Assembly (NCBI GenBank): GCA_904063045.1
Contig: CAJFCJ010000006.1
Location: 558,001-622,000, forward strand
Direction: 5' to 3'
Length of the DNA stretch: 64,000 nt
Source: Dimorphilus gyrociliatus
Lineage: Eukaryota; Animalia; Annelida
The notes under the pieces were generated by a model. That model saw only the letters and a program-made list of their open reading frames with translations. It was not told where the DNA came from and searched no databases. Position numbers and translations under genes: made by a program. Within the stretch, counting starts at the first letter, position 1. The number at the start of each line of letters is the position of its first letter. Positions 7,767 through 38,689 of this stretch are shown here, piece after piece.

Positions 7767-10218
<2,452 letters not shown>

Positions 10219-13442: not shown

Positions 13443-14203
13443 GATATAAAATGACTCTGAAGTCTTGATTAATAAACACTCTTATGAAATTTTCTTACTT
13501 TATCGGTGGCGGAATTTCATAATCTACCACTAAGTGATTTAATTCATACATATTATCTTTGTTTGTACAATTTAACTGCCTTGCAACTTTGTTGTTAATA
13601 TTTTTTTGCACAAGTCTTAAAATTTAGCAATAATAATCGTGTAAATGAATATACGAATCGTATATTTTTGAAAACATTAACGTATAACTAAGTTTCGGAA
13701 AAATTCAAAATATTTTTTGTATAATCAGCAACATTTTCTTTTTATCTTATATCATTAATATATATGACTGAGTTTGAAATTTTTTTTAAAATTACGACCA
13801 CCCAGTTAAATTAATCCAAAATTTACAATTTTCAGATTTTACAAATTGAAATAAAAATTAAGAGCTGGATCCTCGGAAATGAGAACACTAAAATTGCCCT
13901 GTCAATAACAAACGTTTATTCCAAGACTATAAACATTTTTTTTTGATTAATCAGTGCTCCAAAACAATAAATAAAAATAAAACAAAACCCCCAATATATA
14001 GTGGAATATCAACAGATATGATGTTAAGATATTATGAGAAGATCATATTGTCTAAAAATTCATTGAAAACCAATTAGCCACTAATCAAAACTTAAATATA
14101 CACTTATTGCAGTTTTTTTTCCCTATTTTCTTATACAAACCCTGTAAATTACAGTCATATGACCTAAATAAACAAGGTTATTTAGTTCAGCAAAAGTACC
14201 GTT

Positions 14204-14350
14204 GATGACTCATCGTATGAATTTCCTCTTCATCTAATCTCTACTCTGATTGGCTGTTTGTGACATCATATTCTAAGTAAAGCCATTGGGTTTCCGTTTG
14301 ACGTCACAACAAAACTCATATAAAACACAGCGGCTTTCCTGAATCAGTCA
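14204..14350 (+). promoter_or_regulatory. Fos proximal promoter: AP-1, CCAAT, CRE-like, CRE, TATA, initiator
   Basis: GATGACTCATC with TGACTCA at 14206-14212; ATTGG 14249-14253; TGACATCA 14261-14268; TGACGTCA 14299-14306; TATAAAA 14319-14325; TCAGT about 25 nt downstream of the TATA. Confidence 0.75.
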
Positions 14351-14466
14351 TTTAACTATTAGTCAACAAACAAACTCGTCGAAAAACTTACAGCTTTGAG
14401 GAAAATCCCTTACTCACGGTTTTAATTACTCATTTAAGAAGTTATCTACTACTAGAAGTAAGAAAG

Positions 14467-15753
14467 ATGTTCAAGCAGGAGCAAGATAGTCCCAACTCGG
14501 AGTCAAAAATTATTGTGGCGTCAATTTTGTCCTCCATGGCGTCAGGTGGAGTCCCTTCTACGTCATGTGTCGTAAGTTTTATTCTCAACATATTTATGAT
14601 ATAGTTAATATGTTACATGTTTTGTTTATAAACTATGTTTCATAAAACTTAAATGAGAATTGAACGATCAGTTTGTAGGAGTTGGAAAAAGACCAATCTA
14701 TTTTTCTCCCAATCAAAATTTCTTGTAAACTGGTAGTTATAAGCAAAAAATACCAGCCATTGATGTATACAAAAGCGATATGAAACATAGTACATTTTGA
14801 ATTATATTAATAAAGCAGCCCATAATTAATTTTTCTAAAATTCACAGACTCCAACGTCAAGCATAAGCAACCTGTTTCAGAGTAATATTCTGACAGGCAC
14901 AACCCCAACTCTCACCCCAACAACTCTGGCTTCAATAGAGCAAAGTTTTGTTGAACTCCAAAGTATTCCTCATTCAACAGAGGCCCAAGATTTGACAAAG
15001 CAAAGCGGTTTCGCACCCCCAATTGTAAACAGAGAACCTATGGTTGTCTCTCAACACATTCAAAATGGTATGGAAAGCGATGACAGCACAACCTATAGTG
15101 ATCCAGAGTGGGCCCCTTCATCAGCCAAACGATTGAGAACTAACAGATCAGGAGGTAGTAATGCATCGTCTATAACTTCTTCTCCTAATCCAAATATTAA
15201 TGAAGAAGACAGTACTCAATATCTATTGAGCGCTCGTGGTAAAGGTCCGAGAAGACACACAGGGCCAAGACCTAAACGCTTAGAGAAGCTAACTTCCGAA
15301 GAGGAAGAAAAAAGAAAAGTTAGAAGAGAGCGTAATAAATTGGCAGCTGCAAAATGTAGACAAAGGGTTGTTAAGATGACTAACGATCTAGTTGGCGAAA
15401 CAGAACAACTGGAAGAGCAGAATGCGACTTTAGAAAGTGAGATTGATAAATTAGAGCAACAAAAAGGGCAACTAGAATTCTTATTGGAACTACACGAAAA
15501 TTCTGAGGCCTGTTTGAAAAACAAAAGCGTTAAAATTGAAGCAAGTAACCGGCCATCATCCCTTCCACTACAAAACAACCCAGTTTCAACACATGACGTT
15601 ATAACGCCATCCCGTTACATTTTAAATACACCAAGTGGAATAGAAACTCTAGCCGATATACACACCGGCCTGACACCATGTTCAACGCAAGCTCAGAGGT
15701 CTGATAGTTCTGGCAGTCCTGAAGTAACTGGAACAATCTTAAACGGACATTAG
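14467..15753 (+). CDS. FOS: Fos-family bZIP transcription factor; exons 14467-14571 and 14848-15753
   Basis: [17 protein letters not shown] motif and b[26 protein letters not shown]...LEFLLELH. The phase-0 GTAAGT donor joins a phase-0 CACAG acceptor. Confidence 0.88.
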
Positions 15754-15971
15754 GATTACATTCTTAAATGTTAAAATTGATTATTTCTTTCTTTTTTCGA
15801 CTTAAGTTGAATTCGATTGTGTATCATTTGTAAATACATTTAATGAAAATAACTGAATTTGGTCTATTAAAAATATCAAAAACTATTTATTTTATTGTAT
15901 TCTGGGTTGTGTGGCAGCGCCATCTAACGTTGTTGTTTTACAAAAAGCTTCAGAGCGGAAGTTACATCAAG

Positions 15972-15985
15972 CCTTTTCCGTTTCC
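15972..15985 (+). promoter_or_regulatory. Probable 5' terminal oligopyrimidine (TOP) tract of RPS14
   Basis: CCTTTTCCGTTTCC, followed by a short non-coding exon and a GTAGGT donor near 16003. This is the layout expected for a ribosomal protein gene. Confidence 0.55.
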
Positions 15986-16424
15986 ACCATCTTGAAAATA
16001 CAGTAGGTTTTGCATTGAAATATTTATCTCAAAATATCAGCTAAATCAGTTTGTGTAGATTATTATACTCCTTTTGTAGTAACGAATTAGACTTTAACTT
16101 AACATTTTTGTGGGTTTTATTTCAAAAATTTTCGTTTATATTGCTGAATTTTTCAATTCATATTCGACATGTTGGAACTATCTCAAGTTAAGCATGCCAA
16201 GAACAACACGAGAACTAATGCATAGTTTTATAATATGTAAAAAAACAGAATATATTTTATTTTTAATTTTAGATAGTTTCAGAGATTCTACTCCTGTAGC
16301 ATACAGGAATTTGTACAGTCTTACCACAAACAACTAAACGCACGAAAGAAAACTTTAAATTTTACCATATTATCGATCAATATGAAATCTTAGCTAAATC
16401 AGACATATTTCTGAATTACAGAAA

Positions 16425-16953
<529 letters not shown>

Positions 16954-18149
16954 GAACATGTCAATAAAAGTTGAAAAAAACTTATTTTGTTCGGCATCAC
17001 GTTTTTCTTTGGAGATACTATGGCTGGAATAAAAGCAGTGCAAAATTGATATGAAAAGATATTTTGTAAATTATTTTTACTTAGTTATAAACTAGCTATT
17101 ACTCACTAATTAACATAAGATATATAGACTTAAGAGTATTGTCATTGGATCTGAGTCATTTTTTACAAGTCCTTATAGTGAATAACATTTTAGGTACCAG
17201 GAGTCTGATAACAATGAAACAAAATTTTAAGTTTATATCTATAGAACATTACACAAACTGTTTGTAACAATTTTCTACTAGGTGACTGAGATAATATTCT
17301 TGAATTGAATTAATGTTCATGGTTGATGAAGGTAATTGAAACCATCAGATCAACCTCATACTACTGATATTTTCCTTAAAATTTTCTTATTGGAGGTTTT
17401 ACCTTTTAAAATGTGTAACAAAATATTAGTCCAGCATGCATCTTTCAGTAATATCGTAACTGTGCTCGTTAGCTGTAAATAATTTATGATTCTAAAGACC
17501 TACCCGAGAAGTGAAATCGTTTTACACGGTTCACTTTTGTATGTAATATGATACGATTGTTGTATACTGAAAATTATGATTAGATGTAAATTATAAAGTT
17601 AAAATGTTATTCCACTGGCATTAACAGTACTTTTTAACTTTAATTTTAAGAACAAGTTTCAACTAAATTTCGTTGGTATACTAAGTTCACCCCTTTTTTA
17701 CTCATCCAGATAAAATAGCATTGTTTTAAATATGATGTATATTACAGTATAAACTTATACCTTTTTAAGATTTTTAAAACCTTCCTGATAGCAGATAAAG
17801 TCTATTTCTTATTCCTATAAAAAACACTTCAGTTACCGATGTGCTTGGACCAACTATACAGCTGAAAAAATAACTGGCAGGAATAATTTGCTGTAATAAA
17901 TTTCTTTTTTAATTACAAAATACCCTTCTCAAGACGATAAAAGTTATACGATAATATTGCCGGATATAAGGAGTAATAAAATAAATTGCTTTGTACTGAA
18001 AGCAGTGTAAAAAACTTTACATAAATATATTAATTTAATGCTGAAGTTAACCAATCAGCATCAACCTTTTGATTATAAAGGGAAGAAAACAGATAGCTAG
18101 GAACATTTCAAGAGTCGAATTATTAAGTTACGAATCTACATAAGAGAAA

Positions 18150-18919
18150 ATGAAATTTACTTCTCTTATAGTTTTTTATCTGCTCTTCGTGATAACGGAT
18201 CAATTTTCAGTGCGAAAGCTAGAATCTGAAGGTAATGGGCATATGTTTCAGAAAATGTGTAACTTTTAAGAGAGTATAAATAAGAAATCAGTGATTGACA
18301 TATATTAAGGAAAAAATTTTGGAAGTGAATGATCGTCTGCCTGAAGTAGTCATAAAATAAGAGAAAACACTTAAACATATTTATGGTATTTTAAGGTTAT
18401 AGCAAACAAAAGTTTAGTGCAAAATGAAGTTATATTACTTTTTATCTTATCGATCACAAACAAGTAAAAAGAAAAGTTATTTATAATTTGATACGTATTT
18501 CAGCTCAACTTGCCGATTAGTATTTCTATCATTCTTTACTCTCATCAAATAAATTAAAAAATTATTTTTTAGAAATATTATGCTCCTCACATCATAGGTG
18601 TCATTTCTAAATGAAGATTTGTTTACAAGATCTTATGGTTTGTTTCTCTCAACAGACAGTCCTTTAATCAGTATAATAAAAAGGTCTATCCGAGAAAACG
18701 ATGATAGAATGCTGAATAAAAGATTTGCTGAAGTTGTCCCAAGTGGTAAGAAACATTCATTCTATACCTTCTTTTAAAATTTTTTAACCAGAGATAGGAA
18801 GATATTATCAAGGCATCATATTTGGGTATAAAAGATCGTATGGCCACACTCCGGATATGTCTATGTGTTTATTTCTCGGTTTAGATGAATGTAAGGACAA
18901 GGATAACAATGCGGGATGA
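18150..18919 (+). CDS. Candidate secreted neuropeptide/prohormone precursor (99 aa), unclassified; exons 18150-18231, 18656-18745, 18792-18919
   Basis: Spliced translation MKFTSLIVFYLLFVITDQFSVRKLESEDSPLISIIKRSIRENDDRMLNKRFAEVVPSEIGRYYQGIIFGYKRSYGHTPDMSMCLFLGLDECKDKDNNAG*. It has a hydrophobic N-terminus, three KR sites, a GR site and a Cys pair. Both introns are phase 1 GT-AG. CCAAT (18051) and TATAAAG (18074) lie upstream. Confidence 0.65.
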
Positions 18920-19762
18920 AGATCGTTAAGTTTAGCATTCGATAAGCTTGTCTCTATTTTCCTTTCCTGATTTGACTTAATTACTTATGAAGCAAGAAAT
19001 TGCTTAACAAAAATTTGTATTAATATATTCCCCTTTGTGTTCTTAATTTAATTTTCATTATGGTATGAAAAATCGTAATCGAAAGAAACTGATGAAGAAT
19101 CAAAGATTATATAGTATAACGTATGTTATGCACCAACAAAGTTATTAGCTTTGGACAACCAAAGTATATACACCTAACAATACTAAATTAAAAATTCTTT
19201 AAAAAGAAAATGATTATGATTTTGATCGCTATATATATTAAATCTAAAAATAAATGAATCAATGCGATAGCCATTGATTATTTCATACTGTCAGTTAAGG
19301 ACAACTTGTATTGTTTCATAATTAGATATAATTATTAGACTATCAAGTAAATTAATTATAGATATAACTTATATATTTTATATTATCTCATCTACAAATG
19401 ATCTACATACAATAGTTTTTTAAGTTTTATGTTGTCAATATTGTGAACCGATTGCAGTATTTAATACTGTTACGGAGACATAGTGATATCATATCGAAAG
19501 TGATATTAAAGAGATAAACTTTCCGGAGCAAAAACATAGGTGTGAAAATCACTTCATTAATTCTGTAAAATTAAACACTCGGCGCAAAACATGTAGGGTG
19601 TACGTAGGCATATTTGAATTTCAGTGAAATAATTTATTCAAGTTAAGCTTTTTATCTGTGACAAACAAATGATAAAAAGGTTTGCTCATTTCTCCATGAT
19701 TCCAATTAGAAGATAAAGCAAGGCCTCTTCCCAGTGTTAATCATTCATATATCTTGAGGCGA

Positions 19763-20930
19763 ATGAGTTCTGAAATGACATTTTTGAAAAAAGAAGAAAG
19801 AATAAGAGCGTGTGCTGAGATAAATTCAACAGTTTTAAAATTTCTACATTTTCGAAATAGCGTCCATAGAAATCAGACTATACCTTATATTACATTTTTA
19901 TGTTTTATTATGGTAATTGGTATTTTTGGAAATTCTTCTGTAATTCTTGTCTACGTAAAAAAGCGCTTCAAAGCTAATGGAACTCATTTTGTTCTCTCTC
20001 TTGCCACAACCGATCTTCTTGCTTCCCTCGTGGTTTTACCATTTCTTTTACATGAAGCTTGGAGAGTGATTCAGAACAAATAAATAATTTTTACAACTCC
20101 CAAAATTAAAATGCGAATACATAGATATTCTGGTTTCCAATAACTAAAAGCAAAGTTTTAATCTCTGGGTTGGGTCTGCCTTTGCTAGTTAAAATGCTGA
20201 TACAAAAATTTGAATTGAATCACTCTTCAGGGCAAAATACACTTATACCAATGTTCTCATTTGCAAACTTTTGGAGTGGTTCAGACATTCTGTCATTTGT
20301 ATCTCTTGTTTAACTTTAGGTTACGTTGCAATTGATCGGTACTTCTGTATATGCAAACCTCTCACTTTTGTATTGTTTGGTTCAAAAGCTAAGAAAATGA
20401 TGTTTGGAGGTATAATTCTAAGTCCTATTCTAATGACTCCTGTACTGGTCGTGTACGGAACACTGACTAGGACTTTTTCAAATGGTATTATTGGTTGTAT
20501 GTGTGAAATAGATGATGCCTATGTTGGAACGTTAGTTCATGCATCCTTACGAGGAGTACATCTCATACTTTATCTTGGACTAACTGTTGTGATGATGGTA
20601 TGCTACTTCAAAGTATATCGCCAAGTTCGTAATCGTGTACTGCCACACTCTCAGAGAAATAACCGTTTAAGAGAAAAATATCAAATAGCGAAGACGCTGC
20701 TCTTAGTTAGTGTTGTATTTTTATCGACATGGATCCCTTTTTGGATTATTACAATTATTTTTATCATTCGAAAATCATTCTGGATTGAAGCAAGCTGGCC
20801 AGTTCAGAATATTGTAAAGATTGCTAAAACTTTTTATATGGTGAACTACGCCACAGATCCCTTGTTATATGCTTTTTCGTCTGCCATTTTCCGAGATGAG
20901 TTGATCCATATTTTTAAACGCAAATTTTAA
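19763..20930 (+). CDS. Orphan rhodopsin-like (class A) GPCR of the peptide-receptor type; two coding exons
   Basis: Seven hydrophobic segments with GN (TM1), LAxxD (TM2), C at the top of TM3, DRY, WxPF (TM6) and DPLLY (TM7). The intron phase reconciles only with a non-canonical donor (see findings). Confidence 0.85.
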
Positions 20931-21188
20931 TTTCATATTCTATAATTTCGCTTAAATTTTTATGGAACTAACAGTCGTGAATGTTTAAACTGTGAATGAA
21001 AAGCTATATCAAGTAGTAGCATTATCTGCTCTTGTTAACTCTAATCTTTACCATTAACTATCCTAATTTATGTAAGTCTTAAAATTGTAGACAAGATTTT
21101 AACTGTATTTTAAAATAGATATTTAAAAAGAAAAACCTAAATAAGACTTATTAAGCATTTTAAAAGTTCTTATTGATTTAGATAATAT

Positions 21189-22028
21189 TTATTCTGATTG
21201 ATCGTCTGTAGCTTTGTTTTCCTCGTTTCCATAAAAGAGTAAAGGAAACATGCCTATTAAACAACCTAAGGATATACCAAATGTACGACCAGCAAGTGTA
21301 GACATTCTTGCACCCCAAGTAGAGGATTGATAAACGCTTAGACGAGGTGTTTCTAACCCACATTTCGAAGCGAGCATTTCGACGTAGCCCGCAAGTCCTA
21401 AACCACCAATATCAGAGACTAAATTTCCAAGGGCTGCTGCAGCCATAGTTGATATTCCAAGTATAACACCCAATTTTAAATCAATATATTCCCCAGCAAT
21501 AATCATTACAAAATTGTCCAAAAATCCGAATCCAAGAAACGGTATGCAATTAGTAAAGAAAACTATTTATGGATATAAATTAATTGACAAATATAATGCA
21601 TTTATGTACAAAACCTTTCCAAAGTTGTGAATTTGATAGTGTAGATTGGCGGTCGTTCACTTGCTCTGAATTTTCAGTACTTTCTGTGATAAAAGTGTAA
21701 AACTATTTTATATCTGAAAGGATGCAAAGATCTTTAAATAGTAATTTATTCTATAAAAGCTTCAAATTTATTGAAGGTAAATTAAATTTTTAGAGCATCT
21801 ACTTATTTCATCTTGTAAATTTTTCAAACTCTTTTGATCCAATCTCATTAAAAAAGACCGAGTTGAGGCTTGATCATGAAATGATGGAGCTACATCTTGA
21901 TATGTGGAACGAATAGCTCTAAGTGGTTCTTGAGCTCTTATTATCGTTCTCCTCACTAGCCAAAATTGATTACAAATTAATTGAAATCGAGTATCCTTCA
22001 TAGTAAGAAATTTTCTAATAGGCAGCAT
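21189..22028 (-). CDS. TMEM65: Transmembrane protein 65 (multi-exon)
   Basis: FLGFGFLDNFVMIIAGEYID...STMAAAALGNLVSDIGGLGLAGYVE...GCLIGMFPLLF, with a basic transit-peptide-like N-terminus. Confidence 0.92.
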
Positions 22029-22194
22029 AAGTTCCTTTTACAGATTTTTAGAGAGAATGGAAAAATAAATTCTAATAATATTGTTTTTCAGCCAAAATCG
22101 AGCAGAAACTGGTAATCGGTAAAACACTCAGAAATCTATTTGATGGCGCAGACAACTGTAAATATTAGAAATTATTTGAAGCTTAGTTGGAGCT

Positions 22195-25100
22195 ATGGCT
22201 TATTTTTGTAGACAAGCTGAAGGGTTTGACATAAGAGAAAGCCTTAAAATTGTAGATGCTGAAATAGTAGATAAATATGTGGTTAGTATTTTATACAATG
22301 ACTTATTTTTTCCCATGGAAAAACTATAGGAGCAATCGTTAGGTTTATGTAATTCTGATAAAATCCGGTCGCCACTCATGGACTGTCCGGAGGAGATATA
22401 GCGAATTCCACAAATTACATGATGGACTCGGCTCAATTCTGCCCCATAGTGCTAAACTTCCTCCAAAGAGATTAGTAGGTGGGTGTTTGCTACTCCTTTA
22501 CAGGAATCTTTTCATTTTTATTCGCTTTTTTCAATTTAAGGTTCTGATGAAATATTTTCGAACAGGTAATCTATCAGATTCGGTGATTAGCGAAAGAAAG
22601 TTGCTGCTGGAGAACTACTTACACACGCTTCTTTTACATTTAGAAGATATTCCGAAAGACCTTAGTAACTTTTTATCTTTCGATCGATATGAAATTGAAG
22701 GTGTTACAAAAAAAGCATCGGAACAAATGTTTGATCTGGCTGAACAAATGCTAAGCTCTAACCAACCGTGGCAGATTTGCCCTCTCTTATTGCATTCCGT
22801 CTCGAGCAGGAGGCGGCTACCAGCTCCAAAATCCTTTGACAAGAGATCAGATATGGGTCATTTGATGGATTTTGCAAGTCAAGTGAAAAAAGTGCGAATA
22901 TTGGGCGGTTTGACTCCCATTGGTAAAAGTAATATCAAAGAAGAAGAGCTTAATGTTGACCTTTCCATCTTGCACAACCTAAAAGGGATTATCAGAAATT
23001 ATAAATATTTTTCTATCTGATTTCAGATTCCTTGAGTCAAAAAAATGATTAGTTTTTTTTGTAGTCTTAGGCAACAACTATTTACCTTATAAAGTTCATT
23101 AAAAGTGTAAAGAGAATATTTTTGATTTTCCCTTTTCAGCACTAGAATTAGATACTGTAAAAGGCAGAATTTCTGGTGTAGAGGTAATTAAACAATCTCT
23201 TGAAAGTGTAATTTGTAGACGTACAATTTCACATCTCTCTGATATATTTATTGCTGATGCAACTAACAAAAGCATTTGGAACAAATTGACAAGGTCGGAT
23301 TTAAGCTATAATGGATTAACTAGAATTGACGAGTCCACAAGTCTCTTACTATCTTTGCAAAAACTAAATCTGTCACACAACAGATTGACTTCGATAGATA
23401 ATCTTCATCACCTGAGCGCCCTTGACGAACTCAATCTTTCCCATAATCAAATTGCCGATCTGCCATCAGATATGAGAGCTAAAATTGGTAACGTTACAGT
23501 TCTTAATTTAGCGACTACAGGATTAAGGTGTTTGGCACCTTTGGCAAAGCTCTTTTCACTGAAGGACTTGAACGTTAGTGATAACTTAGTTGCAAGAGTA
23601 GATGATGTTCGTCCCATTGCTGGTATATTATTTACTATTTATTTACTCTATGAAGATGTCACATTATTTGCTCCATAGGGCTTCCTTGTCTTGAGAAGTT
23701 ACAATTAAAGCGAAATCCCCTCACTGCTGAACTTGATTACCGCTTCCGCCTCTTGGAATTACTTAGTCCAAGAGAAAGAGAAGTTCAAGTCGATGGAATT
23801 TTTCCGACTGTACAAGAGATTGATACAGTTGCAGTAAGATTGGCAATGACGAAAGCAAAAATTGCTAGACAAAGTAGTGAGATAAATTTAGTACAGAAAG
23901 AGAGGGGTATTCCTGATGGAGCTGATGCCTCCATTCCTCGTGAGTTTTGAATTGTGTTTAATCGGAATATTAATTAATATTTTATTAAAATAACTAAAGG
24001 TAACTTGCCTGATGTTTCGAATTCAAATTTTGTGGAGCTACTTTTAACTCGCATACCGAACCCAATTGCTGGAGAGAGTCTCGTGTCAGTAATCTGGACT
24101 CCTATTGTACTTCCAACGGCTCCACTGGATACTCTTCCGGCAGTGATTGCAGTTAGTACTCATTCCTTGCACATTCTTCGGGCAAGAGGCTCTCCCGGTC
24201 CATTATGTCATGTTGAACATTTACTGCACATTCCTTTAACAAAAGTTTCAATTACTTATCGTCACAAAGTGTGGGTTAGATTCGAAGATAATGGAATACC
24301 AACATCAGTAGCATTTCGAATGATAGAAGACTTAATTACAACTGTTCAGGCAGTAAATAGAGAATGTAAAGTAGTTTTGGTTCCTGATACAATGCTACTC
24401 AATTGCTTAAGTGAAGAAGGATCAACTTCCCCAGCAAACTTTAATTTCAAAGGAAATTGGAAATCAGTTTATAAAATTTACTTTTAAGAGATATTTTAGG
24501 GTATATAAAACTTTTATGCAAAATTTACTGAACTCCACTTTCCTAAGCAGCTACAGCCAAAGTGAATAACTCATCTGAAACTTCTACAATAATTGTAACG
24601 AAACAGAGAGTAATTTATACTCTAACGGAAAATTTATTTGCGCAAAAACTGAGTTGCAAAGTGAATTCTGTCTTCTCCTTCAAGGATAGCTATAAACTGT
24701 TTCTCTCAGAATCTGAAAGAGGCGATAATGTTTTAACTAATTTCTGTCTTCTTATAGACACGAATTCAGATGTTAATTTACATATTAGGTTTGTATCATA
24801 CCGTGATAGAAGGGATTTTTATCTAGCTTTAGCAAATGCTGAAAAGACCTCAAACGTGTATGAAATGGTCGATGACAAAGAAAGCGATGAAAGTGAGGAA
24901 GAAGAGAGTAATAGCGATATTGAAGGTAATGACATAGAATCAGCTGGAAAGAGGCAAATATCTCCAGTCGGTGGCTTTCAATTTAACTCTGTAGATGTTA
25001 ACAACACTTCAAACAATACTCAAAAGGATTATAATGAGAGCGAGGAAGGAGCGACATGCCCCTTGCAGGCCAATGAAGACACTTCTGTAGAAGAAAACAC

Positions 25101-37660: not shown

Positions 37661-38689
37661 ATGATTCGGAGCGATTGGTATTACCTTAAATGGATCTGTC
37701 TTTTAGCATTTACAACTTGGATACTTTTAGGATGGATTAAGAGAGACTCCAAGATCATTTTGCCTCATAATGGACAATTGATACATACCGACATTTTCAA
37801 TGAAACAAGGTTGAACATTTCTAAGCTGCTTGCTAAGAAAAAGTTTGAAAAGAATAACAAATACGTTATTGATAAGGATTACAAATTCGCAAAAACATTG
37901 AAAAGAGAAAATAAAGTACTTTTCTTCGAGTTTAAAATTCCGGAGACATCACTTATTTGTTCAAATGAAACAGAATATCTTATTTTGATCCATACGAATC
38001 TTAAACATTTTGAAAAAAGAAAAATTTTACGGAGTTCTTGGATTAAATTTGCTAATCAATCAAAAGTATATTTTTTCATTGGTACGCATTTAAACGAAAA
38101 ATTGAAGCTTGCTATTATAAAAGAAGCAGAGGAATTCAAAGATATTGTTCAAGTAAATATAATTGAGTCTTATAGTAATTTAGCTTTAAAATCAGTGGCA
38201 GCTTTGCACTTTAAAGATACATTTTGCCCTTCATCTAAATATCTGATCAAAATTGATGACGACGTTATTCTGAATTTTGAAAATTTAATTAAAGCTGTAG
38301 TTCAGTTAAAGTTTACACAGTGGGGAATACTAGGTAAAACAAATATTAAAAGCAGAGTACACCGAAATGGAAAATGGAAAAATACTAATTATCCATATAA
38401 CTTTTACCCCATTTATGAATCAGGCTTATTCTATATGATGACAGCTGATTTGATTCGACCAATGATTCAGGTTTCCGAAATAATTGAAATCATTCCGATT
38501 GAAGATGTTTTTATAACAGGTATTTTAGCCAATTGTTTAGGGGTTAGACATTATTTTGCAAGAGGATTTTGTTCTGCCGAAACTGAAGTTCAGGATCCAT
38601 GCTCATTCAAAAAAAGTGGAATCACACAAACAAACTTTAAAAATCTTTATCAGTTGAAAATTTTCTGGTTTAAAATTATGAATTGTTGA
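37661..38689 (+). CDS. GT31 beta-1,3-galactosyltransferase-like, copy B (intronless)
   Basis: N-terminal anchor; RKILRSSW, DIVQVNIIESYSNLALKS, KIDDDV and EDVFITG motifs. Confidence 0.9.
   Translation: MIRSDWYYLKWICLLAFTTWILLGWIKRDSKIILPHNGQLIHTDIFNETRLNISKLLAKKKFEKNNKYVIDKDYKFAKTLKRENKVLFFEFKIPETSLICSNETEYLILIHTNLKHFEKRKILRSSWIKFANQSKVYFFIGTHLNEKLKLAIIKEAEEFKDIVQVNIIESYSNLALKSVAALHFKDTFCPSSKYLIKIDDDVILNFENLIKAVVQLKFTQWGILGKTNIKSRVHRNGKWKNTNYPYNFYPIYESGLFYMMTADLIRPMIQVSEIIEIIPIEDVFITGILANCLGVRHYFARGFCSAETEVQDPCSFKKSGITQTNFKNLYQLKIFWFKIMNC

Follow-up and report, generated by a model that had tools for sequence, protein, structure and literature searches.

The annelid Dimorphilus gyrociliatus very probably possesses a small, so far unannotated protein-coding gene of three exons, located at 576150-576919 of contig CAJFCJ010000006.1, within a stretch of 64,000 nucleotides (558,001 to 622,000 of that contig) which is referred to here as the window and whose numbering is used below. 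Comparison with the syntenic locus of a related worm shows the candidate's reading frame, splice sites and stop to be conserved under strong purifying selection. The predicted product is likely to be secreted by way of an N-terminal signal peptide, and the chances appear about even that it is the precursor of processed signalling peptides. D. gyrociliatus is used as a model of how nervous system and genome can shrink while the canonical toolkit is kept, and its published set of neuropeptides was presented as complete and canonical. As this gene was missed by annotation, by the transcriptome-based precursor list and by homology searches, lineage-specific signalling peptides may still be overlooked, even in a 78-Mb genome.

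Gene model and genomic position

The candidate occupies a gap of 2.8 kb between two other genes, RPS14 (last exon up to 16953) and a rhodopsin-type GPCR (from about 19763 onwards), and all three are on the plus strand. An earlier reading of this DNA, made from its letters without database searches (the sequence-only reading), had proposed a three-exon model with two phase-1 introns, 424 nt and 46 nt long and bounded by GT and AG, and a product of 99 residues, and every one of these features is present at the coordinates given in Table 1. The CCAAT box, the TATA box and the ATG with a hydrophobic stretch behind it, which it had also claimed, were found on direct reading of the sequence. Exon 1 opens at ATG 18150 with the hydrophobic stretch MKFTSLIVFYLLFVI, intron 1 ends in a pyrimidine tract and the CAG at 18655, and the frame closes with TGA at 18917-18919, giving a spliced product of 99 aa. 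Exon 3 also holds a strong donor-like string, AAT|GTAAGG, at 18889-18897 across the codons of Cys91 and Lys92, which reads GTAAAG in the related worm. No coding-looking exon lies downstream of it, and it was therefore treated as coding sequence rather than as a splice site.

Table 1. Features of the candidate gene and its surroundings (window coordinates)
Feature	Position	Strand	Remarks
CCAAT (NF-Y-type) box, ACCAATCAGC	18049..18058	+	core CCAAT 18051-18055; putative promoter element
TATA box TATAAAG	18074..18080	+	TATAAA 18074-18079; 31 nt before initiator-like CA at ~18105
Exon 1, coding part	18150..18231	+	start codon, predicted signal peptide (~residues 1-16), start of propeptide; ends in phase 1
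Intron 1	18232..18655	+	424 nt, GT-AG, phase 1; donor AG|GTAATG, acceptor CAG|AC
Conserved non-coding block	18371..18655	.	3' two-thirds of intron 1; putative functional element
Exon 2	18656..18745	+	residues 28-58 in part; DSPLISIIKRS conserved, followed by a variable stretch
Intron 2	18746..18791	+	46 nt, GT-AG, phase 1; donor TG|GTAAGA, acceptor CAG|AG
Exon 3	18792..18919	+	EIGR, YYQGIIFGY, KR, Cys-x7-Cys C-terminal peptide ending in Gly, stop
Candidate polyadenylation signals	19187..19254	+	ATTAAA at 19187 and 19237, AATAAA at 19249; from a pattern scan

Conservation in a related worm

A word search with the open frame around exon 2 gave one match, an ORF of 58 aa within a Logan contig of 92 kb (run SRR23372228). 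The region 81470-91646 of this contig (contig 115887) is syntenic with positions 14000-24000 of the window, its gene order being bZIP, RPS14, the candidate, TMEM65 and nischarin. The locus is identical in a second Logan run, SRR23372229, while other Logan contigs were too short to give a third lineage. The exons of the neighbouring genes share 73-79% nucleotide identity between the two worms, which argues against mis-assembly or contamination with D. gyrociliatus DNA as the origin of the match. The proteins of these neighbours are 83-100% identical. Their synonymous sites are saturated (pS 0.62-0.96), so the conservation of the candidate is not simply a matter of recent divergence.

The related worm keeps the ATG, the three reading frames, both donors, the acceptor at 18655|18656 and the position of the stop. 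Exon 1 aligns with no indel up to its donor GT, directly after which the alignment breaks. The first eleven residues of exon 2 are identical with four synonymous changes, after which comes an in-frame indel of 6 nt, and the whole exon has 12.5 synonymous and 7.5 non-synonymous differences. Intron 2, of 50 nt in the related worm versus 46 nt, is 59% identical with both of its splice sites kept. Exon 3 is the most conserved part, with 40 of its 42 residues identical, about 15 synonymous against 2 non-synonymous differences, and 15 of its 18 mismatches at the third codon position, a third-position periodicity. The stop falls at the same codon (TGA versus TAA in the related worm), and downstream of it identity falls to 39%. 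By the Nei-Gojobori method omega was 0.33 for exon 1, 0.074 for exon 2 and 0.015 for exon 3, with a pooled value of 0.087 (pooled pS 0.565), and the synonymous excess over the pooled exons is significant (binomial p = 2e-11).

These observations bear on the possibility that there is no gene at this position, the model being a product of chance ORFs in AT-rich DNA, of a conserved non-coding element or of 5' exons belonging to the GPCR. AT-rich DNA easily gives pairs of K and R, hydrophobic runs and TATA strings, and part of intron 1 is itself conserved without coding. However, neither the synonymous excess nor the periodicity of exon 3 and the retained stop position would be expected of such DNA, the indel of exon 2 keeps the frame whereas indels of 1 nt occur in the intronic block, and the related worm keeps the candidate with no GPCR at the locus. 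The absence of a gene is thus strongly disfavoured and is regarded as very improbable. A synonymous/non-synonymous test of this kind between two genomes can validate tiny hidden genes without a transcript, and the contigs of SRR23372228 and SRR23372229 could usefully serve for comparison when further hidden D. gyrociliatus genes are to be validated.

Splice sites and coding potential

Splice sites were scored with a matrix derived from 86 introns inferred in the D. gyrociliatus genome, a crude and noisy measure, by which intron 2 is strong and intron 1 moderate to weak overall. Measured against inferred true sites, the donor of intron 2 ranks at the 77th percentile and its acceptor at the 55th; against background dinucleotides, the donor falls among the best 0.75% of GT and the acceptor among the best 4.6% of AG. 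The donor of intron 1 ranks at the 31st percentile of inferred true sites, and its acceptor is weak. Two in-frame rival acceptors for this intron, 18597|98 and 18616|17, are possible from the D. gyrociliatus letters, the former having the best matrix score. Both were rejected, as their AG is lost or shifted by one base in the related worm, with a 1-nt indel between them. The pyrimidine tract and acceptor at 18655|18656 are conserved there, which supports this position as the join of exons 1 and 2, a join that the sequence-only reading had considered the least certain part of its model and that is borne out by the comparison.

By hexamer coding score, exons 3 and 2 lead all plus-strand open frames in the 2.8-kb gap between the neighbouring genes. 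Per codon, exon 2 scored 0.19 and exon 3 scored 0.26, coming near the 0.29-0.30 of two known D. gyrociliatus precursors, and exon 1 was neutral. Null open frames equalled the score of exon 3 in 6.5% of cases and that of exon 2 in 10%.

To estimate how often such models arise by chance, a scan was made for sets of three exons that together encode a signal peptide and dibasic sites. When its thresholds matched the values of the candidate, it found no model in order-3 Markov sequence totalling 24 Mb, and the candidate locus was the sole model in 299 kb-strands of real non-coding DNA, although these figures are rough since the thresholds were chosen after the locus had been seen. Relaxed thresholds gave 2.8 chance models per Mb of random sequence, a rate which speaks in some measure for the absence of a gene. 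The relaxed scan of real non-coding DNA returned one other model, on the minus strand near 9769 of the segment that spans positions 120001-130000 of the contig. All of its open frames have a negative hexamer score and its translations are of low complexity, so that it looks like a chance model.

Predicted product and its processing

Judged by simple rules, the N-terminus resembles a signal peptide, with K2 followed by a hydrophobic core from F3 to I15 (13 residues; best 11-residue hydrophobicity window 2.95) and V-I-T before D17. The hydrophobic stretch is conserved, as are small residues at positions -3 and -1 before D17 in both worms (V-I-T versus A-I-T). The c-region is very short and the hydrophobic run ends at I15, features which would suit a membrane anchor or a mitochondrial-type leader on a coding gene whose product is not secreted. 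Such a product nevertheless appears improbable, as the core comes straight after MK with the small residues just mentioned in both worms, falls short of the usual length of a transmembrane span and is followed by a polar chain. Secretion is accordingly the more probable fate by these rules.

The sequence-only reading had listed RK, KR, KR, GR and KR sites and a Cys-x7-Cys loop, which are present as RK23, KR37, KR50, GR61, KR72 and Cys83-x7-Cys91. K36-R37, G60-R61, K71-R72, Cys83, Cys91 and a terminal Gly (G99) are conserved in both worms. This last residue had escaped the earlier reading and would allow amidation of the C-terminal Cys-loop peptide. K49-R50 is KG in the related worm and is not a conserved site, which means that SIRENDDRMLN and FAEVVPSEI are not conserved as separate peptides. 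Monobasic cleavage sites usually have an upstream basic residue; GR61 has none at P4, P6 or P8. Among the published precursors of D. gyrociliatus, some use GR sites and some end in Gly-stop (PMC7854359). The 99 residues contain no repeated peptide copies, and the Cys loop is unusually hydrophobic.

These features are shared between two possible products. One is a small secreted protein that is left whole, such as a mini-protein, a cofactor or a defence or reproductive factor, and this carries considerable weight at somewhat below even chances. Its identity with the related worm's protein (87%) is spread over nearly the whole chain and is not confined to peptides between cleavage sites, so that the retention of KR pairs does not in itself point to cleavage. 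The related worm has lost one KR site, repeated peptides are absent, and there is no transcript-derived record such as plentiful neuropeptide mRNAs tend to leave behind. Against this, the size of the product and its variable middle fit a precursor, as do the conservation of three basic sites and the Gly residues before R61 and at the C-terminus, and two Cys among 83 residues offer little to hold a fold. The best overall explanation is considered to be the other product, a secreted precursor of intercellular signals cut by convertases, which is given roughly the same weight as all other readings together.

If the product is such a precursor, the TATA/CCAAT promoter would drive a short mRNA, and the 99-aa product would enter the secretory pathway through a signal peptide of about 16 residues. 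Prohormone convertases would then cut at the conserved K36-R37 and K71-R72 and possibly after G60-R61. This would release an N-terminal propeptide and a variable middle peptide, the latter maybe ending in an Ile-amide (from the Gly before R61), together with the nonapeptide YYQGIIFGY and a C-terminal peptide of 26 residues. The 26-residue peptide would be closed into a loop by a Cys83-Cys91 disulfide and amidated at its C-terminus from the final Gly. The processed peptides would act as an intercellular signal, either as neuropeptides or as peptide hormones, and could be made synthetically as candidates for receptor deorphanisation.

Searches for homologues and records

Homology searches were run exon by exon, the exons being joined only for counts and for the pooled substitution statistics. 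No Pfam match was obtained for any of the exons singly (E <= 1). Searches of the D. gyrociliatus genome itself (77.9 Mb, 349 contigs) with the DNA and with exons 2 and 3 as protein gave only self matches and thus no paralogue. With phmmer, neither a homologue of exon 3 nor a protein containing it was found among 1.84 billion representative proteins, the single match being to a tandem-repeat protein and rejected as spurious. The best score in the ESM Atlas with exon 3 was 0.86, and recognition was low.

The candidate gene is in neither the public proteome nor the published D. gyrociliatus neuropeptide list, the latter having been derived from transcriptomes and a cleavage-pattern script (PMC7854359). 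None of six candidate motifs occurs in the supplements of that study, whose full precursor list (Supplementary Data 2) has no similar entry, and the peptide motifs were not found in the literature searched. The absence of any named neuropeptide family that fits, which had been the impression of the sequence-only reading, therefore holds across Pfam, phmmer, the published precursor list and the literature. Back-translated, species-specific pieces of the published DLamide and HFAamide precursors each match the genome at one place. The two loci encode these precursors, and the DLamide product equals CAD5114462.1 of D. gyrociliatus exactly, in agreement with the species named for this genome. The DLamide precursor has Logan-derived copies on short contigs, whereas the protein collection has no transcript-derived protein with exon 3. 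If the candidate is expressed, its expression may be low, sex-limited or stage-limited.

Relationship to known precursors

General features of prohormones are present in the candidate, namely conserved basic sites (KR37, GR61, KR72) and Gly residues suited to amidation (G60-R61, G99). It can plausibly be placed in the general class of prohormone-like secreted-peptide genes, without a family. The closest architecture is that of precursors with one cyclic peptide at the extreme C-terminus, and the orphan precursors of annelids are also close.

Like the allatostatin-C (AstC)/somatostatin-type precursors (D. gyrociliatus AstC 1 and 2; PMC7854359), the candidate is short, has a predicted signal peptide and ends, directly after KR, in one peptide whose hydrophobic loop would be closed by a disulfide. 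However, its loop has 7 residues where 6 are invariant in AstC, and on loop length it falls outside that family. There is also no sequence similarity to AstC and no Pfam or HMMER match, and the candidate has a long polar tail that ends in Gly.

A further likeness is to the orphan pro-neuropeptides of annelids (Platynereis/Dimorphilus MNC, QERAS, HIGA, GNXQN and Whitnin). These are small and secreted with dibasic sites, some have C-terminal Cys peptides, and no occurrence is known outside annelids or spiralians. The candidate has no motif in common with them; Whitnin of D. gyrociliatus has the spacing C-x11-C, and MNC contains four Cys. Transcripts support those families, as do antibodies or mass spectrometry for some of them, whereas the candidate is known from genomic sequence. 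The excitatory peptide/CCAP-type precursor of D. gyrociliatus shares with the candidate a C-x7-C loop (CPVWALHAC in that precursor) and an amidation Gly. There, however, the loop comes directly after the signal peptide and is followed by Gly-Lys-Arg, while that of the candidate is C-terminal, and the two sequences are unrelated.

To judge from the genomes compared, the family has so far been seen only in D. gyrociliatus and the related worm. It is tentatively suggested, at not much less than an even chance, that it represents a new neuropeptide family, restricted to dinophilids or very fast-evolving, with a cyclic amidated 26-mer and a Tyr-rich nonapeptide as its products and with a 285-nt intronic enhancer for cell-specific expression.

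Putative promoter, 3' end and conserved intronic block

The CCAAT box is identical at 10 of 10 positions in the related worm, while the upstream region around it is only 64% identical. At the aligned place of the TATA box the related worm has TATATAA. Transcription would be expected to start near the initiator-like CA at ~18105. A TATA box and/or a DPE has been reported for most D. gyrociliatus promoters (PMC7854359). With regard to the candidate polyadenylation motifs downstream of the gene, such motifs are common in AT-rich DNA.

The block at the 3' end of intron 1 is 84% identical over 285 nt to the related worm, with five indels of 1-2 nt. Its mismatches are distributed 15/13/16 across the three phases and so lack codon periodicity. 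Since neutral sites are saturated between the two genomes, the block can be taken as a constrained non-coding element, and it is probably an intronic cis-regulatory element. A structured RNA was considered and rejected, as no fold signal was seen on either strand (z -0.04, +1.18) and Rfam gave no match for the block (E <= 1, 16900-19800). In D. gyrociliatus, introns with ATAC peaks are reported to be larger than non-regulatory introns (PMC7854359). The compact promoter and the intronic element together are testable as a cell-type-specific driver.

Other genes in the window

The GPCR downstream of the candidate (19763-20930, plus strand) is a divergent rhodopsin-type receptor of two exons. The solved structures nearest to it are the orexin, neuromedin-U and NPY receptors (E ~5e-13), and a word search of the protein collection found neither a relative of it nor the protein itself. 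The syntenic locus of the related worm contains no such gene, which suggests a lineage-specific gain or loss at this site. A ligand-receptor pair formed by the candidate and this adjacent GPCR was considered and is unsupported, the related worm being without the GPCR at the locus.

Elsewhere in the window there is an ORF with no exact match in the protein collection; its public model, if any, must therefore differ from the plain ORF. It lies at 37661-38686 on the plus strand, is intronless-looking and codes for a galactosyltransferase of 342 aa with the Pfam domain Galactosyl_T.
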